Positions 18,710 through 34,717 of a stretch of 64,000 nt of DNA are shown piece by piece. Position 1 is the stretch's first letter; every line of letters begins with the position of its first letter. This DNA comes from Chlorokybus atmophyticus. Lineage: Eukaryota; Plantae; Mesostigma and Chlorokybus algae. The notes beneath the pieces were generated by a model that was not told the DNA's origin, made no database searches, and was given only the letters and a program-made list of their open reading frames with translations. The stretch is from contig RHPI01001037.1 in NCBI GenBank assembly GCA_009103225.1, positions 1,670,551-1,734,550 on the forward strand, read 5' to 3'. Both the position numbers and the translations under genes were made by a program.

Positions 18710-21700
18710 ATGGCTGCGACAATGGAGGCTTACCGCCGCCCACGAGGTAGGGTTTGCGTGTAAACGCTAGCAGTGTCATCCGCAACAGGTCTGCCGTGCA
18801 TGCTTGGGTCAACATCAGCGGGTAGCATACACCTAAAGAGTGTGACTTGTCCTGCAATGTTTGTCTCTTCCTGGCATCATCGAACTGGTGCCAAAAGCTA
18901 AGTTCACAATGCAGCTGCACAAGCGGGTCTGGAAACGTGATTGCTGCCGGCAGATGGTTGCATGTAAGTATATGGCGGTTACATCGGTTGTGGTGTCGTG
19001 CTGGCAAGGGGGAGGAAGGGGGGAGTTAGAAGGGGGAGTTTGTTGGCTAAATCAACGGTGTGAGTAAGCTCATACATTGAGTGGTAGGCCCTGATTTCTG
19101 GCATATAATTGTTACAGCATTGCCGGACGAGCCTGCTGCCTTTCGACCTGTCACGGCTTATGCACAGCTGCGCGTGCATACCAACGGTACGCCTTCTTCA
19201 GCTTATGGGGGAACCCCGCGGGATGACACGCCCAGGGTTGGCAGCTTACAGAACGGCACGCCACACACCAGAATGTGAGCAACTGCAGACAACAGTTGCT
19301 TGTGTACTGATCTGGAATGGGGCGCGTTATGAGACAAACCTTGACAGCGTGCGCCAGGTGGCACAACGCACATGTATGCGCGAAATTGACTAAAGCTGAC
19401 TACTTGCCATGTTGCGCAGTGATGTGGGAGCTGTGCAGAATGTAACTCCATTGAGCGTGATTCGTGAGCAGTTGAGAGAGGTTCCCAAACCAGCAGCGTC
19501 AACTGCGTCAGTTGCGACGGTGGGCAGTGGCGGTAGTCATGGTAGTGCTGAGGAGGACACAACAGTTTGCAACTCTACAGAACACAGAGGTCCTGGCATG
19601 CCACGCCCAGTACCCAAGAAGCTGGGTCAGTAAGGGCTTTCTACCGCACTGCAGGTTGCCTCTTTGAAGATGGCAGGAACATTTGTCATGATAGTATGCT
19701 GTTTGTACCCATGTAATGTATTATCATGCTGTTTGCCGTATGGCATTGAACTCACATGTCTCGCAGGGGGGCCAGCACGTCGTGTTGCAGTAACAACACC
19801 AAATTTGCCCAGCGATGAAGATCTGCTGGCGCGTATTGCACAAGAAGGTATGTTCACTGCGCTCACTACAGCAGTCTGCTTGATCTGTGAGTTGGGAACT
19901 TGGTTTGCCACTTTGCTGCGCTCTTTGCATACAGATAAAGCTCAAAGCAGGGCGCCATCCGGTGCCGAACAGCAACCCGAGCCAGCCGCACGCGCATCCA
20001 CCACTGCCGAGGACGCCCATGCGAGTATGGCAGCTGTGCAAGTTGTTTCAAAGCCCAGAGCACACAATGGAGCGCTTATCGCACCATCTTCAGCAAATGC
20101 TCTTAGAGACGGGGCTGTTGCTGCCTTGCCACGAGATCAGCCTCCAGATAAGCCTGCCGTCGAGCCTTTCCGGCAAGACCCTGCTGAACGGGCTGTCCCA
20201 AGCAACTCGGTAGACGGAGCCTTTATGCAGAGTGGGAGTCAGCAACAGAGCAAACAGAACGCGCGCTCCATACCAGCAGCTCCCACGCCTGTACAAAGCA
20301 AAGAGCCTTCAGAGTTGCAACAGCCCTTTCGTGGCGCTGAAGCGTCAGCAACGTCAGCTGCGTATTGCAAGCCTGCTGTAGCGCTGGCTGCAGGGCAAGA
20401 ACAGTACCACGAAAAGGCCCCAAGACCTGCTGTTCAAGTGCAACAACAGCAACAAGCATTGGCAGTAGCAAGGACAGCTGTGCCTGGGCGACAAGCGGAC
20501 TCAATGGCGCCAGTCGCAAGTGAGCCTGCGCATACAGTACCCTCTTTCAACAATGCTGGTGGGGCGCAGAACACAGAGGCTGCTGACAAAGCACAACAGC
20601 ACACCGAGACAAGGGCTGCAACCGCAGAAGGTGCGCATGCGCGAGAGGATGCGAGCACCATCTGGGTGAATGGCGTCAGGTACACGAAATTGGAGTGCGT
20701 TGGCAAGGGAGGCTCCAGCAAAGTTTTTAAGGTTTGTGATCAGGAGTTCATGATCAGTGACAGTGACACAGCTGCTGACAGGCTCTGACCTTATGCAGGT
20801 CATCGCTCCAAACCGCAAGATATATGCAGTCAAGCGCATCCGTCTCAATGGTCGGGATGGAGAGTCGGCAACTGGGTTTCTTGCAGAGATTGACAAGTTG
20901 CAGCAGTTCAAGGGGCATCACTACATCATTCAACTGATTGACTCGCAGGTAAGTGTAAAACATCTGTGCTTGCTGCTTAACTTGCTTTAACACAACAAAC
21001 AGTGGTGTTTCTTTGCGCCAGGTGCTAACACAGGATGGGCTCATCTACATGGTGCTCGAGTATGGTGAAACAGACCTGGCACGACAGCTGGCGGTGCGAG
21101 CAAGGGAAGGTCGTGTCAATGACAACAACTTTTTGAGATACTACTGGCAGCAGATGCTGGAGGCAGTGGCCACAATACACAAGGGTCGTATTGTCCATCA
21201 AGACCTGAAACCTGCCAACTTCGTCCTGGCTGAAGGTGTCCTAAAGCTGATAGACTTTGGCATCGCCAACCGTATGGCCTCAGAGAACACCACAAGTGTC
21301 ATGCAGGAGAGCCCAGTCGGCACGCTGAACTACATGGCACCAGAAGCTATCAGGTGCATGCAAAACACCAGTGTCATATGACGTACTTGTCATTATGCAT
21401 GGCAGCACAACGCCGCGTTGCTGATGGATGTTCCTTTTGCAGTCGAGGGGCACCAGGCGTACGTGTTGGTCGAGCATCTGACGTTTGGTCACTGGGGTGC
21501 ATATTGTACCAGATGACGTATGGTCACACGCCGTTCCATGCGCTGCCATACATCCCTAAGATGCATGCTATCCTTGACTCGCGACATGCCATTGCATATC
21601 CTCACATCCACAACCCTACACTTCTAGACACTCTGCGAAAGTGCCTAGAACGCGATCCCGCTCGCCGCATTAGCATTGAGGGACTTTTAGAGCACCCCTT

Positions 21701-21969
21701 CCTCAACCCGTATTGTGGGTTGTTGCCACCGCCATCAACCCAGGTACGTCAATGTGGGTCTCGCAAGGGATCTTGGAGGTTTTGTTGTTGCTGCCATGTT
21801 ACTCTACTATGCATCATGTAGTTGCATCTGTGCCCGCAATTGCAAGGGCTAGTATGTGCGTGGTACGCTGCACTGATATCCTTGCATTCTGGCACAGGTT
21901 GCCCAGGACGAGAGGCCACCTGCATTAACACAGGAAGCCATGCCTGGTAGATCAGGCACAAACAGCTAA
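18710..21969 (+). CDS. MPS1: MPS1/TTK spindle-checkpoint dual-specificity kinase (about 9 exons)
   Basis: ATG 18710. Long low-complexity N-terminus. Kinase motifs [106 protein letters not shown]. The last short exon (21898-21969) is tentative. Confidence 0.93.
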
Positions 21970-24177: not shown

Positions 24178-25654
24178 TTAGTTCTTGGGGCCACTGGTCT
24201 GGCTTGGTCCGCATCTCTCAACCATGGTGTCATACAACTGCTTGCCATTCTGCAGAGCAACAACGCAACAACACCCAAAAGGATCCAATCAACCTTTGTG
24301 CGCAGTTGCAACTCTCTTGCATCATTACAGCACAGCATTGCATTGTACAGCCGCTTACCATGATGACTGGGAAGAAGTGTATTTGTCCTTCCGGCTTTGT
24401 TTGAGTCTCCTTGAAGTAGACCAACACAGGAAACCCAGGCCACCAGAACTCCCAGTTGGTAAAAGACTTATAACTGCATCAAAGCAAGGTAGATCCAAAA
24501 TCAGCAGTGACCTGATCCTTCGGAAGAGATCCCAATGCATGTGTAGTACTGCCTTGTGTCAACACAATCAGCAACCACTTGTTCATGTACCTCCAACGGT
24601 TGTCACCACCAACAAAGGCATTCTCGGATGGGTCCTTATCCTCACCAATGGACACTTTCTGCAAGAAGCAATGGCAAGCTGTGACTCAGGGCAAGGAGCA
24701 GCAGGAGCATGAATCAGCATGACATGATAGGCTGCTGTACACTGCCATTGCATGCGTACCAAGGTCTCAGCATCAAACTGGAACCGCACCCGGAATGTCT
24801 GCAACAGCGCCATATGTGTCAGGTTGCGCACCATGCTTGCACCTCGCTCATAGGCATGTTATGGCTTGCTTGACAGGTCAACACATGCAATGCCTGCTGA
24901 AACTTTTACTCCCCATGCAGAGTACCTGCACCGCCAGCAAAGCGCCCAGCAGAGCAAACGGTGCTGCAACCAAGTCTGCTTTGGCGGAGGCAAGCACAGC
25001 GCCAATGCCTGCAAGTGCGGTTACCAAGCATTAGCGCACGTGTACTGCGTGCACACAACCCAGCATGATCGATCACTTTGCCTAGCAAAGAAGCTGCTAG
25101 CCGTAGGTCTGGCTCTATGACAACAACGTCCTTTGCCGTGGCCTGCTCAAATGCACACAACATAGCGTCAAGTCATCCTCAAGCAGTGTGCTGCGGGCTT
25201 GCTTACTCACTCCAACAGCTTCACATACGCTAAGACTCAACCATGCACGTACACAGTGCAACACTCGCTCACAAGACAGCAGGTCTAGAAATGTCACTAA
25301 CAATGAGCAATAGTACTGGCAAGTACGACTAGCATAGCGGCAAGCCAGCGTACCTTGCGAGCAACGACTTGAAGCACGTGTCCAGCACCGGTTTCTGCCA
25401 TAGCAAGCAGAACATCAGCATGTTCAAGGTTGCAACTTTTTGCATGGTCAATTCGTACAATGCAACGCCAACCCCAGCAAGCACATACTTGCGCCAAGCG
25501 CCTTGGAAGCCAGGGGCAGCCTGGCTCCTCCAGCAAACGAAGTGGACAGCGGCCTCAAGCCACGGCAACAGCCACGAGGCGTTGCTGAAGCAGCCACTGG
25601 AGCACGGAACACGCAAGGCGAGCCCAATCCCACTACCATCACCATCGCCGCCAT
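24178..25654 (-). CDS. DUF3119-family chloroplast membrane protein (cyanobacterial origin), multi-exon; missed by the ORF track
   Basis: ATG 25654 MAAMVMVVGLGSPC transit peptide. Spliced exons ATAKDVVVIEPDLRLAASLLG|IGAVLASAKADLVAAPFALLGALLAVQ|TFRVRFQFDAETL|KVSIGEDKDPSENAFVGGDNRWS|YKSFTNWEFWWPGFPVLVYFKETQTKPEGQIHFFPVIM|NGKQLYDTMVERCGPSQTSGPKN*. TAA at 24180-24178. Confidence 0.88.
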
Positions 25655-25851
25655 CGCCGACGCCACCGCCGCTATCGCCCACGACGACAATGCCAATGCC
25701 AAGCATGCAACAATGTACCACGTTAGCTTCCAGCAACAACGGTACTACCCAACGTTAGTTAAGGCTCCAGCTTCAAACAAAGATTTGGGTGGCATCACTC
25801 TGGCAATTATTGCATGCCGCGGCAGCGGCGGCGGTGTCGGCGGTGTGGGCG

Positions 25852-28800
25852 ATGGGGACGCCCGCAGGAGCAGGGGTCGGGTCTGGAGCGAGGAGGTCTG
25901 AGGGCTTTCTTCTCCAGCGAGGGGGCGGAGCTATCGTCGGTGCGGAGGTGGTGCCCCGAGGCGATGAAGTGTGGCGCCGCTTCCGGGCGGCGGGCTCACT
26001 CGGCGGCCATGTGCCCAGAGCTGAGGCTGAGGAGATGGCCGCCAGGCTGTCTGCACTTGAGCAGCAGGTTGATGTCTACTTATGTGTGTTATGGCATGGC
26101 AAGTAATGTTGCGTGCAGCAAGGCTTTGTTGGTGTTTCATTTCCATGTTTTGGGACTGGCTTTGTGGCTGTGAACGTTGCTTTCATCCATCAGGCTGAGT
26201 GGCTAGAAGGAGAGAGGGAAACATTGATTGCAGAAGTGGAGCAGCAGGCTTACGCTTTGCAAGCTGCGGAGAATGCTGCTGCCGCTGCGCAAGTAAGATA
26301 GCAGCATGCAGCTTGAAACGCAATCCCCAATTCGTGTCCCCTCTACAGGCAGCGTCTATGCACTGATTGCATGCGTCCAGCATTTCTCATGTTCATTAAA
26401 CTGCAGTAGGCAATATTGCAAGCACTACCGGGTTATCAACGTTTGTCAATGCGCTTGTAGGCCGACAGCATGTTGTTGCGACTCTTGTAACCATCGTGTG
26501 TACTAGGATGCACTGGGTCAGGAGACGAAGCAGCATGAGCTGCGCGTTAAGACCATGGAGCAGGTAATGCGCTGATGCACCTGTTGTGTTTGGTTCGCAC
26601 ATTGAAGCTTGCGCGCATGTGCACGTTGCAATGGCATAGTGGATGTTGAACTATCACCACATGCATTGAGTTGAGAGCATTGTCACAACAGCCATCACAT
26701 TGGCATTTGTAAACGATGTGCATTGACAGGTGTTGGCGAGAGTCCAAGCAGAGCTTGAAACAGAGCGATTGGTGCGCCAGCAGGTGAGCGTTACTTGTGT
26801 GACTGACTACTTGCCACTGTGCAAGACGTGCCCATGCCCGCTCACCCGTACAGAATTTATATCTCGGTTGAGCTGACGGAACAGCACCACGTGAGTGTGT
26901 CATACATGTCAATATTCCTGGCCTGATCATGTGCATGGTCATTTTGCGCATGCAGGCAGAGGCTGTTCAGAAACGAGCAGAGGCTGAGTTGCAGCAAGTA
27001 AGGTTGCAGGAGTCCGCCAAGCTGACGGCACTTCAAGAGGAGCTTGAAGCCGCACGCCTAGCCGCCCAGACTGAACAAGAAACAGCAGGTCAGGACTACG
27101 TGCACAGTGCTGAAGAGTGCTGTTCTGTGTCCTCTTGGGCAATATTTTGGTGGGGTCGCACACATATTTGGTGTCTTGCAGAGCGGGAGAAGGATTTGCT
27201 CACGAGAAAGCTGAGGGGTGCACAGCAGGCTGCTACACATGCAGATGAGTTGCGCAAAGAGGCAGAGGCCAGTGCAGCTGCATCAGTAAAGGCGGCAGAA
27301 GTTTCAGCGACAAAGGCTCGCAGTAAGGCAAGTGGCTGTCTGGACATTTATCACAGGGTTGATCATGATCAGTTCTAGTCCGTGCTACATAGGCTTGTCG
27401 TGTGTGCCAACAAGACATGTCGCAGGGATATCGTTGGTCCTGAATGATGTTGGTTGGGCCGTGGCTGCATAATTGCGTGGTGCACACTTTCCGTGTATGC
27501 TCTATCTGCACATTATCGTATAGCGCTAGAGCTATACTGCTACCGCTGATGTCCATTGCTGGTGGAGGTGCCATCTATGTTGCTTTTATCAACTCTTGAT
27601 GACTGCTATTAGGCACGCAAGACTGAGAAGCGTGCACAAGAAAAGGATCGTGAAGCTCAGCAGCTGCTTGAATCCGCACAGCAGCGGGAACAGGCACGTT
27701 GCAGCCGCACTGAGTTAATGCTGTTGCTGTTGATCTTACTTTCCTTGCTGACACTAGATGCTGAGTGGGTCGCTATTCTTCGTTGCAGGAGGTAGAGGCG
27801 CGAGAAGGGGCTGTCAGACAACAGCAAGCCAAGTTGGACGAGGCTGTGAAGTCGTTCGAAGATGAGCGAAAGAGCCTTGAGATGCGGGAGGAACACTTGC
27901 AAAAGATTTCCAGTGAGGTATAGCTGGGAGGCATCCCTTCTGTTTGTGGCCCTGCTTGTCGTTGATGCTTACATCATGTGCGCAGAATCTAGAACGGTAT
28001 GCTGAGAGTGGACACTTGGAAGAGGCGCTGAAAACGAGGCAGACAGCGCTTGAACAGCAAGAGGCTGAAGTCCGGTCCAAGTTTGCAGAACTGGAGCAGC
28101 AGTTTGCAACTGTCTCGGAGGCAAAGACAGTGAGTACAGTGAAGACAGATAGTTTTTTTTTTTGTTTTTACTTTACTGCAGCGTATGCAATTTTGACATG
28201 GCTCAAGCCTTGTGTGCAAGCATACGCGTGTATATCAAATATCTATAGTCGTGCAGGAACAGAGTCTTGGTGAGTGCATGCTCACCGTTAATCAACTGTT
28301 TGTCAGGCACTTGAGCAACAGCGCGCAGAGATGGAAGTGGCACGTGACGCATTGTCTCAGCAAGTTGCAAAGTCAGACAAACAAGTTGAGGAGATACTGC
28401 ACCAGCAGGACGTTTTGGAGAAGCAACAGGTGCTCAAAGCATGTTGAGCAGCCTGCATGAAGTTCAGGTGTAACGCTTTTGATGACAGACCGCTATGCAA
28501 GAGCTGCAAAGGGACATGGATGCGCGGGAAGCCGCGGCAGAACAAAAAGAAGCAGACTTGATTGCAAGAGAAAAGGCGCTGGCAAAAAAAGACGGACAGC
28601 TGTGCAAACGCGAGGCATTGCTGCAGAACTTGAAAATGGAGGAGGCGCAGGCAAATCGCAGGTTGGTTCATGTTTGGTTCCGTGTGCTTGTGGTTCTACC
28701 ATGTGAACAAGCTGAGTATACTGTTTTTCATGATATGCGCAGAGTAAAGGAGGCTATGCGTCTAGAGACTGAGGTACAGCAGCGAGAGAGGCAGTTGCTG

Positions 28801-30270
28801 GCAGAACTGTTGAAACTTGAAAGCCAGCCTGATCCGATGGAAGAGGTTGCGAAGAGGGAGCAGGAGTTGATGGCTAGGATTGCTGACAGAGAAGCCAGTT
28901 TGCATGAACAGGCAGCATTTCTCGCGGAGAAGGAACGCAAATTAATGACAGAGCTCCTTCAACTTGAAGGCAGTGTTGATACAGAGGAGGTTGCCAACAG
29001 CAAGAAGCGACGCAGAGTGGAGTCTCATCAAGATGCTCATTGCCCTCAAGGACAGCCACCCAGTCAGCCAGTCGATGCGTTGAGTACTCCAAGCAGGAGG
29101 AGAGCCTGGTGGTCTTTCCTTCACGGTCGCAGGTCAGCGCTTGACTGCTCTGAGGTCATGTTCAGAGCCAAACTGTGCACTTGTGTAATGTTATGTTGTT
29201 GTGTTGTAGGGAACTGGCGATGGAGCAGCTGAGCACACCCCAGGAGGATGGGGATGAGCACATGCATGCTTTGCCGCCTATCGCAGAAGGTACCTCAGAG
29301 AGGTCAATGGCAGCTGATGAGCCCGGCACGCACGAGCAGAGCGCTGACAAAGGCACTAAGCGTGACGGGTCTCGCTATCAATTGCGCGAGAATGCCAAGC
29401 ATCGGCAGACTTCTGCAGATGTATCATACGAAGCACCTGCTGCGAGTGATGCAGAGGAGCATCACACATCTGCAGAGGTGTGTGCTGCCCCTGAAGCGGA
29501 TGAGCAAGTTGCCCCTGATGCACAAACAATGGAGCCCGCACGAGATGAACACCAGGCCGATGCGCCGGCGAGCGCATCCGCCGTGTCTGTCACTGTGACA
29601 ACAGTGGTCGACACAACAACCACTGCATGTCAAAGACCTGAGGACTTGCACACGCAAGACATGCTGGTGGACTCGCTGCCGCCCCTGCCGACAGAACAGG
29701 AACTTGAGCTCGCTGACATTGCCGCAGGCATGGTTGAAGACGCCGCCGCCGAGACGCCTGCTGCAAGCACAGGCCAGCACTCTCCAGCAACGCCTACGGG
29801 ACAGCTCCAGGCCATGGCAACCGGCTTCGCCTCCTCCGTCTTCTCCACCATCTTCAACCGGAGGTAGGTGGTGGGGTTTTTGGTCTTAAGCCACTGTTGT
29901 AGCATGCACAACAACAACAACAACAACAACAACAGCAGCATTCACAGCAACCATAGCATGCCATGGCTGTTGGTTGATACCAAAACTTCACGCCAACACT
30001 CCTTGTGTGTGATGTTCTGTACACAGTCCCAACATTTTTCCTCCGTCCAAGCTCAACGACCAACCCGACACGCTGGACCTCCAGCAGCAGCCTTCGGCCT
30101 CTAACGATGCACAACCCGCAGCCACGGGTGACAGCCACTCCGAGCAGACAAGTCAGCGCAGCCAGAGGCGAAGTAGTAGGAAGGCCGAGCGGCAGGTGCA
30201 GTCGGTGCCGACGACGCCGGGCTCAAGCCGCTACAACCTAAGGCAAAAGCGGGGCTTATCTCACAAGTAG
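25852..30270 (+). CDS. Long coiled-coil nuclear protein resembling NMCP/CRWN (plant lamin analogue), about 13 exons
   Basis: ATG 25852. Head DEVWRRFRAAG...AARLSALEQQ. Several hundred aa of E/Q/K/R/A coiled coil. NLS KKRRR at 29002-29016, then an acidic tail with TP sites. C-terminal TPGSSRYNLR at 30214-30243. TAG at 30268-30270. Confidence 0.7.
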
Positions 30271-31009
30271 TGGGGTAGAGGTGGGCTTGCTTGACTGACA
30301 GCCAGAAGCGGATGCTGCTATTGGACCTGTTGTGTATGTACCTTTATGTAGTTGTTGTCCAAGCGTTGGTGCTGTATGTGGTATGGTGGCAGCTGGTGTT
30401 GGCTTGCGTGTATGCTTGTCTCCCTTCATACACACGACAAACATGTGTCCTTGCCTCTGTTGGTTTTACTGTCCATTGCAGACTCCTGCTTGCATTGTGA
30501 CAACATTCAGAGTGACACTATGCTGCATGCCATGGACATGTCGCCTTGTGTTACTGGTGTTGCTTTCATGCAATCAACATTGCCTTCGTTAATGAGGCTA
30601 TGGCGAGCAACCAGCGCATGCAGTGCATAACTGCATGCGCTCGTTGCTCGCTACAGCGACAGGCGCATGCGCATGAACACTTCAGCAAACAGGCAGAATG
30701 CGTAGCACAGGCAACCAGTAGAAAGACTCGACGCAGACAGAGGCCTTTTATGTACAATCATGTGGTAAGCTAAATTTAGATTAAAAGTTATTATCAATAA
30801 TTTTATTATGGATGCAGCATGTCAGCATTGAAGCACACTTCAATCAAGTGCCGACTGCAAGCCCCAATTTGTTCAAGAGCTGTGCTTTGATGGCCTGTGT
30901 GAGTACCACTTACATTAGGTCAAGCGTGTGGCGCGTGCCTTCACTCAGTATGCACCTCCCTGGCCTTGGCGACGTTCCTGCCTCACTGCGCACTGAACGG
31001 GCGGCAGCC

Positions 31010-32421
31010 ATGGCGGCGGGAGGGGTGGCGATGCACAAGCGCGTGTTCAGGGCCGGCTGCGTCCTGCAGTCCCTGGACGCCACCACGCTGGAGATGCTGG
31101 TGCCTGGGGAAGTCGGACTGGACCAACACGGCAAGGTCAGGCGCCGGGGGGGAGCAACATTGCGTATGTGCGTGCGTGCGTGCTTGTGTGTCAGCATACG
31201 TGTTTGCATGAGTGTGAATAATAACTATACAATGCTCTGGCTGCTTTCTTTGTTTGTACCAGAGCTGTGAGTTGACAAAGGACTGGTGGTGATAGATACG
31301 GTGGTAGCAATGCATGCATGTCTATGTCTCTGGTTGCTGCTAAAGCAGTGTATGTGCACGCATTGTGCATGAAAAACTTCTGCTGTCAGCTGATAGCTAG
31401 CACGGTGGTTACAACTACGTCAAGGTGTCGTCCAGTTCTTACGGCGATGACTGCAATCAGCGCTACTTTATTGCATTTGCACACCTTTCAAGGAAAATCT
31501 ACAAGGCAAATGCATGGCGACCAGTGCTGCCAACACCCACCTTCATATATGTTATTACACCAGCCAAGCAGCCATGTCCAGCATGGTCAGAGCATGCATT
31601 CTATTCTGCCATATAATGTAATACAATACCCACTCATCTCACTCTGTAAGCACCCGTGTCCGTCATAGTAGCACACAGCTTCATATCTTCTTGTCCCAAA
31701 GGTGGAGTATTGCAGACTGGCATCGGGTGGAAAGAGACTCATTGCCACGCCGGACGGCGTGCGTGAGAGTGCGAGTGATGAAGCTGATGAAATGCATGTT
31801 GGCCTGCCGAAAGACGGGGATGTCGATGTCGATGTCGAGGAGCTTGGGGAGGGGACGATGCTGATGCCGGGGTTTGTGGACTTGCATGCGCACGCACCGC
31901 AATACAAGGTGAGGGTGGATGTTTGGCCTCGATGAGAGACATATGCAGACACGCACGCATGCACCCGCACACGCATGCGCGTACACACACACAGGCACGC
32001 ACACATGCATGCACGCATGAACCTGTGCGGAAACAAAACCACATTCGCGAGCACGCGTAGGCGCCTGCCTGGACACACACAATCATGTGTGCTCTTTCTG
32101 CACGCATGTCCGTGACACACACACGCACGCACACGCACACGCACACGCACACACACACGCACACGCACACGCACCTCTCCCTAGTTTGCAGGCAGCGGCA
32201 ACGACTTGCCTCTCCTGGACTGGCTCAAGACCTACACTTTCCCGACCGAGGCCAAGTTCAGTAACTCAGATTACGCCCGTACCGTCTACGACAAGGCCGT
32301 GCGACGCCACCTGTCGTTCGGGTCGACGACGGTTGTGTATTTTGCGTCGCTGCATGTGGAGGCGACGATCGTGCTGGCGGATGTGGTGGAGAAGTATGGA
32401 CAGAGGGGGTTTGTGGGAAAG

Positions 32422-32452
<31 letters not shown>

Positions 32453-34298
32453 TGCGCACGTGCTCGTGTCTGGGTGTGGGTGTGGGTGTGGGTGTGGGTG
32501 TGGGTGTGGGTGCGCGCGTGACTGTGCTGGCGTGCGTGCGTGTGTGCGTGTGCTTGTGCACGCACACCCACCCACACACCACACAATCCTTGTATCAGGT
32601 CTGCATGGATCGCAACAGCGAGCCTTACTACGTCGAGTCCGAGGAGGAGTCCGTGCGCGGGACGCTGGAAGTGGCTGAGAACATTCTGGCGAGGAACAAC
32701 CCTCTGGTCACACCCATCATAACACCAAGGCAAGTGGACAAGTTAGTCGTGTGGTAGTACAACATGTTGATGTGTGTGTGTATGTGTGTGTGGTGCAGGT
32801 TTGTGCCGAGCTGTTCGGCCGGACTCATGCAGAAGCTGGCGGACATCGCGGCTAAGCTGGATATCCCCGTGCAGAGCCACCTGTGCGAGAACAAGAGCGA
32901 GATAGCGTGGGTTCGGGACCTGCACCCCGAAGAGGTGTGAGTGCATTTGCGTGAGCTCGTGTGCTTTTGTGCATACCTGTGCGTGTGTGCAAACATGTGT
33001 GTATGTTTGAGCCTGTGTTAATGTGTACACAAGTGCATGTACGTGCAAACCTGTGCGTGCGTGTATGCGTGCGTGGGTACGTGCGAATGCGCTCATGTGC
33101 ATCCGTGCGTGTGTAGCTGCATTTCCCAATCTAGCGAGGGATCTCTCATGCAATATCTCAGGACACGTACACGGGAGTGTACGACCGTTACGGTCTGCTG
33201 AGCGCGCGCGCGTGCGTGATGGCGCACGGCGTGCACCTCACTCCCGGCGAGCGGCGCGTGCTGGCCGAGCGCGGGACGGGCATCGCGCACTGCCCCATAT
33301 CGAATTTCAACCTGCGAAGCGGAGTGTGCGACGTGAAGCAGCTCATGCGTGATGGCGTCAAGGTGTGTGCGGTTGTGTATGTGTGTGTGTGTGCGTGTTT
33401 GCAAGTTTTGTATACACACATGCTCGTATGTACCGTGGCAGTACCACAAGCGCACGCCCACGTGCACACGAGTTGGCACACGCACGCACGTACGACCGGT
33501 GTGTGTGTGTTGATTGCTGATGTGGTATTATTGGTTGTGTAGGTGGGTTTGGGGTCTGATGTGGCCGGCGGGCACCACCCTTCCATGCTGGAAGTCATGC
33601 GCGCGGCCATTGCCGCCGCGAATGTCCTCACCTTTGATCAACCACAAGTGGTGAAGCCTGTAAGTGCTGTTGCATAACTGCTTTCAACAACACCATCAGC
33701 ACACTGCCACTTGCATGGAAACCCAACATCGCCATGTGCAAGTTACATATGTATTGTTCTATACAAACACTGTCACCACGACATCTCTGTTAGATGTAGA
33801 ACATTACAGAGCCATAAAATACGCCCCGCACACGACATTGACAGGATAGAACTTTGTGTTTTCTGCTGTCATGCTGCATATGGCAGAGCTGGCAGCGTAA
33901 CACGAGATCGAACACTTAGGTCAAGCAAGCTTTTTGTCAGTAATGTCACTGCAACGTCGCATGTATGAATCCACTAAACGGCTGATACAATGTGTGCGTA
34001 TCAACAAACTTGTCCCCCGTCGCAGCCTATGTCAATTCCGGAAGTGTTCTATTTGGCTACTTTGGGCGGGGCGCGCGTGATGGATATCGACGGCACAGTC
34101 GGCAACTTCGCCGTCGGGAAGCAGTTTGACGCGCTGGTTGTTGATATCGGCTCCGACAACGGCCCCTTTGACGTGTTCGACGACGACAGCCACTTTGATA
34201 TCCTGTCCAAGTTCATCCATCTGGGAGATGACAGAAATATTAAGCGGGCGTACGTTGCTGGCAAACAGATTGTGCCGATGCAACAACATTCATTGTGA
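31010..34298 (+). CDS. GDA: Guanine deaminase (amidohydrolase superfamily, EC 3.5.4.3), 8 exons
   Basis: PGFVDLHAHAPQY (HxH), DLPLLDWLKTYTFPTEAKF, GQRGFVGKVCMDRN, ITPRFVPSC, QSHLCEN, MAHGVHL, IAHCPISNFNLRSG, VGLGSDVAGG, YLATLGGA, GNFAVGKQFDALVV, LGDDRNI. Stop at 34298. Confidence 0.95.
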
Positions 34299-34717
34299 TG
34301 GAGAGAGTGTTCATTGGGATGAAGATAGTGAGTGCTGATTGTTTGTTATTGCAGTTATATGTGCACTGTGTATATGTACTAGCATGATTGCTATCTTTAT
34401 AAGGATGTATAAGAATACGCTTTCAGCTCGCTCAGCTTAATGTATATACGTGACCATGCTGAGTGTGCACATGCACACAAGCACGCGTGCACATGTGGCT
34501 GCACAAGCACACGGACGCACTACAAGCACTGACAAGAGAATGAATGTTATTAGAGACAAATGGTTGAATCTGCTGCTGCGTGTCGCCTGAATTCTACATG
34601 TACACACGAACGGTGGTGGGGGGTTGGAAATACAATAAGAGAGGAGTCTACTCTCATAGACATTGGCGGCTATCTACTCGCTCTGTTCTGCGCCATTTGC
34701 AATGTGTTGTTGTTGTG

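Follow-up and report, generated by a model that had tools for sequence, protein, structure and literature searches.

The DNA analysed here is a stretch of 64,000 nucleotides from the genome of the alga Chlorokybus atmophyticus (GenBank assembly GCA_009103225.1, contig RHPI01001037.1, positions 1,670,551 to 1,734,550 of the forward strand), referred to below as the window and numbered from its first letter. On its forward strand, between a protein kinase gene and an amidohydrolase-family gene, lies a gene of 14 exons that is spliced and expressed and that encodes an 880-residue coiled-coil protein, which we consider likely to be a divergent member of the NMCP/CRWN family. NMCP/CRWN proteins are the plant analogues of lamins, and Chlorokybus represents the deepest streptophyte lineage, in keeping with the "very early-branching" position that an initial annotation, made from the letters alone, had given to this gene.

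Read from stop to stop, the plus strand of 25700-30500 yields a chain of short open segments in which A, E, Q, R and L are frequent. In a run search, two small data sets from two studies each matched roughly half of the words sampled from 25852-30270, which is the pattern expected for spliced RNA. Compared with 25500-30700 (5201 letters), the transcript contigs X1 record 2, of 2724 nt, and X2 record 3, of 2436 nt, leave out 13 introns, which after permitted boundary shifts comprise 11 introns of the GT-AG class and two of the GC-AG class. The runs are labelled only "RNA?"; since 13 introns have been removed at consensus splice sites, the contigs can only be derived from mRNA. The joined exons form a single open frame from the first in-frame ATG at 25852 to the stop codon at 30268-30270, exactly the limits proposed in the initial annotation. 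The joint between exons 13 and 14 (29863/30027) is present in three runs, and because the transcript contigs carry the exon joints, exon 14, with its RYNLR motif, is joined to the rod in RNA, which settles the worry of the initial annotation that it might not be. The more divergent run X3 has this joint too, and all four of its listed differences are synonymous, providing weak evidence for purifying selection.

We note three further features of the introns. The two GC-AG introns (27328-27612 and 27694-27788) are consecutive and are both backed by transcript contigs from two studies. Intron 11 (28662-28742) is 81 nt long, in frame and without stop codons, such that its retention would add 27 residues to the rod; no retained form was found among the transcript contigs. 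Intron 13 contains an (AAC)n microsatellite at 29900-29946.

The encoded protein is rich in alanine (15.6%), glutamate (13.4%) and glutamine (10%), and divides into a head (residues 1-55), a coiled-coil rod of about 480 residues (~56-535) and a tail (536-880), that is, into the short head, long central coiled coil and longer tail of the tripartite NMCP/CRWN layout. The head is short and basic, with EVWRRFRAAGSL at residues 39-50 followed by AARLSALEQQ, and its VWRRFRAAGSL block leads into the position of NMCP head motif 11 (residues 48-66). A crude heptad scan found residues 56-535 compatible with a coiled coil, with a single proline break, SQPDP, at residues 479-483. Correspondingly, the AlphaFold2 model of exon 12 consists of two long helices parted at SQPDP (predicted local distance difference test, pLDDT, 86-98) that run to about residue 532, followed by a disordered stretch with the KKRRR cluster, a probable nuclear localisation signal (NLS), and then by a short helix across RRRAWWSFLH. 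Exon 13, which encodes most of the tail, was modelled with a mean pLDDT of 51.6 and only two low-confidence helices, close to its end; the tail is acidic and predicted to be disordered. Serine/threonine-proline (S/T-P) sites at residues 3, 567 and 591 flank the rod on both sides, and two of the approximately five tyrosines (0.6% of residues) fall within RY[NQ]LR motifs, the second of which is part of TPGSSRYNLR (residues 863-872), encoded in exon 14. The protein also passes all four physical filters of Kosztyo and Richards, which ask for at least 800 residues, an isoelectric point (pI) of 4-6, disordered regions and a central coiled coil of at least 100 residues. Every feature of this layout that the initial annotation had listed is present in the spliced product, including the NLS and TP sites, the EVWRRFRAAG...AARLSALE head, TPGSSRYNLR and the additional RYQLR; what it missed is the small exon 26507-26563, which carries the DALGQE block discussed below.

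Ciska et al. (2019, PMC6506774) defined 15 conserved NMCP motifs and placed the origin of the family in charophytes. We scored the 15 consensus motifs on the spliced protein by ungapped local alignment, taking as null shuffles made within head, rod and tail. The tail motif 14 stands out: TPGEKRYNLRR against TPGSSRYNLRQ scores 46, compared with a null of 21.8 ± 2.7 with a maximum of 32 (Gumbel p = 5.6e-6). The full NLS-linked motif, QTPGEKRYNLRR, corresponds to TPGSSRYNLRQKR at residues 863-875, preceded by the basic cluster RRSSRK, and a motif-14 profile built from three species (Physcomitrium, Chara and Klebsormidium) matches residues 863-873 better than any of 5000 decoys. In the rod, motif VI (QEVEARE, which also occurs in Spirogloea) reaches 46, where its null gives 30.7 ± 3.9 (p ~3e-3), and motif V reaches p ~2e-3, but with its best match out of canonical order.

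The NMCP sequences used for comparison were these published motifs of 11-20 residues and, from Spirogloea NMCP A, the N-terminal 100 residues, which span the head, the MGLL block and motif II. Residues 2-100 of NMCP A align end to end with residues 40-137 of the Chlorokybus protein, with identity in 31 of 99 columns and a single one-residue gap. The strongest blocks are VWRRLQGAGAL against VWRRFRAAGSL and an identical DALGQE with a shared histidine, the spacing from the VWRR block to DALGQE differs by one residue, and all quarters of the alignment contribute positively. Its raw score of 120 compares with 50 ± 6.5 for shuffles of either partner, 35 ± 6.4 for local-segment shuffles and 37 ± 6.6 for shuffles that preserve the heptad register (maximum of 85 in 3000 shuffles), while the best of 644 other real 98-residue windows of the same protein reaches 46 and reversed sequences reach 58; the corresponding Gumbel p lies between 2e-8 and 5e-7. 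BLASTP gives 50.4 bits, with pairwise E values of 9e-13 uncorrected, 1.9e-4 in mode 1 and 0.002 in modes 2 and 3 (composition-corrected). Since the tail motif had already drawn attention to this protein, the alignment serves as a confirmatory test, and as such it is significant under every one of these statistics. The first 100 structured residues and the tail motif match NMCPs specifically, and these two independent quantitative tests support homology to NMCPs, in agreement with the assignment first proposed from the letters.

Several observations weigh against this assignment. The rod-start motif I, the best conserved of the family and the MGLL core of the diagnostic 50-residue block, is not found, as the initial annotation had noted: its consensus scores at chance, and the aligned stretch reads AEWLEGERETLIAEVEQQ, with ERETLIAE at the MGLL position, so that the hallmark core is replaced, with its flanks and spacing kept. 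Motif I is missing from a few algal NMCPs too (PMC6506774). In the consensus scan, motifs 5, 4 and 11 and the remaining rod motifs are likewise at chance level, and 5, 4 and 11 are not individually significant. For motif 11 (GGLDEESLERKDRAALJAYI, with a W-basic block before it), a profile of seven algal sequences has its best match at residues 56-66, in the expected place and register, and the Spirogloea alignment extends across motif 11; 747 of 5000 decoys score as well as the profile match. The place of tail motif 5 (SWLRKCASKIF) is taken by AWWSFL (residues 573-578), which shares only the small-W-hydrophobic core and has no cysteine. An acidic helix (744-760) and a hydrophobic helix (778-797) may, according to the low-confidence model, correspond to the NMCP acidic stretch and C-terminal motif 4 (IGKKLWNFLTT). 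Rod motifs II-XI were not found in order, only V and VI exceeding chance, and a chain of all 15 motifs in canonical order scores no better than permuted orders (p 0.17-0.31), for which reason we make no claim of rod-wide collinearity. The rod itself, at about 480 residues, falls short of the 650-890 of land plants, being some 200 residues below seed-plant rods, and further short of the still longer rods of other algae. In a proteome-sized search in the composition-adjusted mode 2, the Spirogloea alignment has E = 12 and would not surface in a blind search, and only one full NMCP was available for comparison. Finally, no orthologue from another genus was found in the protein searches with exons 12 and 14, in the metagenome scan with exon 13, or at a locus reached through the neighbouring kinase gene (see below).

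The rival that draws most on these points, and that we regard as unlikely, is an unrelated long coiled-coil nuclear protein with an RYNLR-type motif acquired convergently, for example to bind the same import or envelope partner, and an N-terminal similarity that arose by compositional chance. Short linear motifs do arise convergently, and coiled-coil proteins are a known source of false similarity (PMC5630835); besides the absent MGLLL core and the chance-level motif order of the rod, the composition-adjusted BLASTP score is only 23.9 bits. Such an origin is difficult to reconcile, however, with two independent regions, the N-terminal head/rod start and tail motif 14, that match where an NMCP predicts, or with a pairwise E value that is 0.002 even at its most conservative, given that the tail motif had picked out this protein beforehand. 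Moreover, neither composition-preserving shuffles nor those that keep the heptad register exceed 85, and no more than 46 is scored by real coiled-coil stretches elsewhere in the protein, against the observed 120.

Database searches gave no other identity for the protein. No Pfam family scored above threshold in any exon of at least 27 residues, and the kinesin-, SMC-, golgin- and myosin-type domains sought beside the coiled coil (motor, ATPase, hinge and GRIP) were absent down to E = 0.1-1, leaving the unrelated kinesin, SMC or golgin coiled coil that the initial annotation had named as a possible refutation without a domain match. With exon 12 as the query, phmmer returned one chance match among 1.84 billion representatives, to a homeobox-repeat protein (P0001), and therefore neither a public protein with exon 12 nor a flood of generic coiled-coil matches. 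In sequence searches of PDB, exon 1 and exons 11-12 retrieved nothing relevant, and no lamin or intermediate-filament chain. No candidate had three 5-mers in common with exon 14 in a word search, single exons lying outside the length window of that search; exon 1 had no usable match in a protein atlas, and exon 13 had no relative among the metagenome contigs scanned. None of the published algal sequences of motifs 11, 5 and 14 equals those of the Chlorokybus gene, which is therefore not one of the known algal NMCPs.

The assignment bears directly on the only systematic survey, in which Kosztyo and Richards (2024, GBE, PMC11604088; bioRxiv 10.1101/2024.07.24.604981) filtered the proteomes of eight streptophyte algae for size, pI, disorder and coiled coil, and then demanded the 50-residue MGLL block, in addition to running tBLASTn with that block; its supplement provides algal motifs 11, 5 and 14 and three full Spirogloea NMCPs. 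For Chlorokybus, 9 proteins passed the physical filters, leaving 7 finalists and 0 candidates, and NMCPs were concluded to be absent from Chlorokybus and Mesostigma, with an origin between Mesostigmatophyceae and Klebsormidiophyceae tied to the transition to multicellularity and to convergence with lamins (PMC11604088). The gene described here probably overturns this conclusion of absence. An MGLL query cannot find it. Its N-terminal region is divided among four small exons, and when we ran tBLASTn with the Spirogloea N-terminus against the 64-kb window, exon 1 ranked first with E values of only 0.005-0.06, meaning that a genome-wide tBLASTn would miss the gene. The collection of 1.84 billion representatives includes the Chlat1 models, yet none has exon 12, indicating that the public Chlorokybus proteome is probably without a correct model of this gene.

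Table 1. Features of the NMCP-like gene and its product (positions in the window; residues of the 880-residue protein).
Feature	Position	Strand	Basis or remark
Transcribed region, 14 exons	25814..30362	+	Joints in transcript contigs X1, X2
Exons 1-5	25814-26067, 26194-26292, 26507-26563, 26730-26783, 26956-27088	+	
Exons 6-10	27182-27327, 27613-27693, 27789-27917, 27986-28129, 28307-28429	+	
Exons 11-14	28489-28661, 28743-29132, 29210-29863, 30027-30362	+	
Coding sequence, 880 aa, pI 5.09, 97 kDa	25852..30270	+	
Head block VWRRFRAAGSL, residues 40-50	25969..26001	+	Alignment with Spirogloea NMCP A VWRRLQGAGAL
Coiled-coil rod, residues ~56-535, exons 1-12	26017..28992	+	Heptad scan; AlphaFold2 on exon 12
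Exon 3, starting with DALGQE..H, residues 106-114	26507..26563	+	NMCP rod motif II region
QEVEAREGAVRQQQ, residues 262-275, spanning the exon 7/8 junction (intron 27694-27788)	27691..27830	+	Matches NMCP rod motif VI QEVEAREDALRRER
Proline linker SQPDP	28822-28836	+	Heptad scan; AlphaFold2 break
KKRRR basic cluster, residues 539-543, just after the rod	29002..29016	+	Sequence; probable NLS
TP site, then RRRAWWSFL, residues 567-578, short predicted helix	29086..29121	+	Place of NMCP tail motif 5
RYQLR, first RY[NQ]LR motif, residues 637-641, KGTKRDG before it	29373..29387	+	Sequence
Acidic helix, then hydrophobic helix ATGFASSVFSTIF, residues 744-797	29694..29855	+	AlphaFold2, low confidence
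Basic cluster RRSSRK (846-851), then TPGSSRYNLRQKR (863-875), C-terminus	30163..30267	+	NMCP motif 14 region

Among the neighbours of the gene, X1 record 1, a transcript contig of 783 nt and very high abundance (word depth ~1500), covers 25500-25674 of the plus strand and runs into adapter sequence at 25674. This leaves a very short intergenic space of about 140 bp before the NMCP-like transcript begins downstream on the same strand. Further upstream, 19634-21818 (+) holds a gene for an Mps1/TTK-type protein kinase. Its 384-residue open reading frame at 19634-20785 matches eukprot:jgi/Chlat1/4544/Chrsp29S04592 at 99% identity, which places the window on scaffold Chrsp29 of the JGI Chlorokybus assembly; this public model (360 residues) covers only 20% of the 384-residue open frame upstream of the kinase domain, and looks N-terminally truncated. 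We also sought a syntenic orthologue of the NMCP-like gene through this kinase. The 85-kb contig k141_835980 of ENA ERZ27237461 (GC content 63%) carries a related Mps1-type kinase, and was ruled out as it comes from another organism and shows neither synteny with the window nor a homologue of the NMCP-like gene. Downstream, 31700-34300 (+) holds an amidohydrolase-family gene of guanine deaminase-like type, with Pfam Amidohydro_1 on 33135-33539 and with introns full of (GT)n/(CA)n-type simple repeats (~31600-33600).

If the protein is an NMCP, its parts suggest how it would act at a lamina, a function that we infer by analogy with the NMCPs of carrot and Arabidopsis. The rod would form parallel dimers that assemble into filaments beneath the inner nuclear membrane, KKRRR and RRSSRK would drive nuclear import, and the conserved N-terminal block together with the two RY[NQ]LR motifs would keep the protein at the nuclear periphery, as in carrot NMCP1, for which Kimura et al. 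(2014, PMC3935212) showed that peripheral localisation is driven by the first 141 residues and by the RYNLRR linked to the NLS. Lying to either side of the rod, the S/T-P sites would permit disassembly driven by cyclin-dependent kinase (CDK) in the open mitosis of Chlorokybus. A true NMCP relative could instead be no lamina component at all, having the head and tail modules in common with the family and acting elsewhere, such as in the nucleoplasm, at chromatin or in a spindle matrix. The much shorter rod would fit such a role, given that rod length is considered important for filament assembly (PMC6506774), as would the missing motif I, which carrot NMCP1 is reported to need for peripheral localisation (PMC6506774); against this, both drivers of the peripheral localisation of carrot NMCP1, the RYNLRR motif and the N-terminal region, are kept here, and no second NMCP-like gene able to take the lamina role has been reported in Chlorokybus. 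On balance we consider a role away from the lamina quite improbable.

That the gene encodes a highly diverged lamin (a type V intermediate filament) and not an NMCP is barely credible, since its lamin-like tripartite layout with an NLS directly after the rod, its LEGE and LEGS tetrapeptides close to the two rod ends, and the resemblance that Ciska et al. (2013, PMC3617829) noted between NMCP RYNLRR and the lamin A tail sequence EYNLRSRT stand against the lack of any Pfam Filament or lamin-tail match in any exon or any lamin or intermediate-filament chain matched in PDB, a tail predicted to be disordered with no Ig-like fold, and a C-terminus, GLSHK, with no CaaX end. A related and bolder proposal takes the protein for a short "proto-NMCP" standing between lamins and plant NMCPs, in which case the plant lamina would descend from an ancestral eukaryotic lamin and not be a convergent invention. 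The features that can be cited for it are the lamin-sized head, the intermediate rod length, the NLS directly after the rod and the RYNLR/EYNLRSRT resemblance; we judge it very improbable.

Returning to the reading as a divergent NMCP/CRWN protein, the best explanation of the data includes that NMCPs date to the base of the Streptophyta and do not track multicellularity. Should the gene be a real NMCP, the origin of the family would shift to the base of the Streptophyta or earlier, the MGLL block used as diagnostic query would not be universal, and the protein would be the shortest and most basal member, suited to testing which parts are needed in lamina assembly and whether the family derives from lamins. 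It would also exemplify how both proteome filters and tBLASTn overlook a gene with small N-terminal exons that the public protein set apparently lacks.

The closest comparison is with the NMCPs of streptophyte algae, namely Spirogloea muscicola NMCP A-C, Klebsormidium nitens A0A1Y1I0R3/GAQ84530.1 and Chara braunii CBR_g27897 (PMC11604088). Like these, the Chlorokybus protein has a head, a rod and a disordered, acidic tail, with a pI of about 5; it shares with Spirogloea NMCP A the collinear VWRR..AG.L and DALGQE blocks, has QEVEARE in the rod, and shares with Klebsormidium (RRYNLRK) and Chara (KYNLRR) an RYNLR in the tail. In contrast, it measures 880 residues where theirs are 1345-2066 residues long, its head has 55 residues where theirs average more than 150, its rod has only about 480, the MGLL core of the diagnostic 50-residue block is replaced, and it carries RY[NQ]LR twice, with the better copy at the extreme C-terminus; its lineage, moreover, was scored as lacking NMCPs by Kosztyo and Richards. 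Land-plant proteins of the NMCP1/CRWN1 type (carrot DcNMCP1 and Arabidopsis CRWN1-4) share with it the tripartite plan, the NLS-linked TPGxxRYNLR, S/T-P sites to either side of the rod, two coiled-coil segments separated by a short linker and, possibly, an acidic stretch ahead of a hydrophobic element near the C-terminus. Unlike them, it is without motif I and without the KKLWNFLTT end, its candidate motif 5 is cut to AWW with no cysteine, its rod is about 190 residues short of the conserved ~670, and its best RYNLR copy is held in an extra terminal exon. Metazoan lamins, finally, differ in having the intermediate-filament rod consensus, the Ig-like tail domain and the CaaX box that the Chlorokybus protein lacks, and no sequence similarity is detectable. 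We note separately that residues 868-875 (30229-30252) read RYNLRQKR where lamin A has EYNLRSRT, and that no other lamin similarity was found. What the two have in common is the plan of head, rod, NLS and tail, putative CDK sites flanking the rod, and an expected role as a filament of the nuclear periphery.

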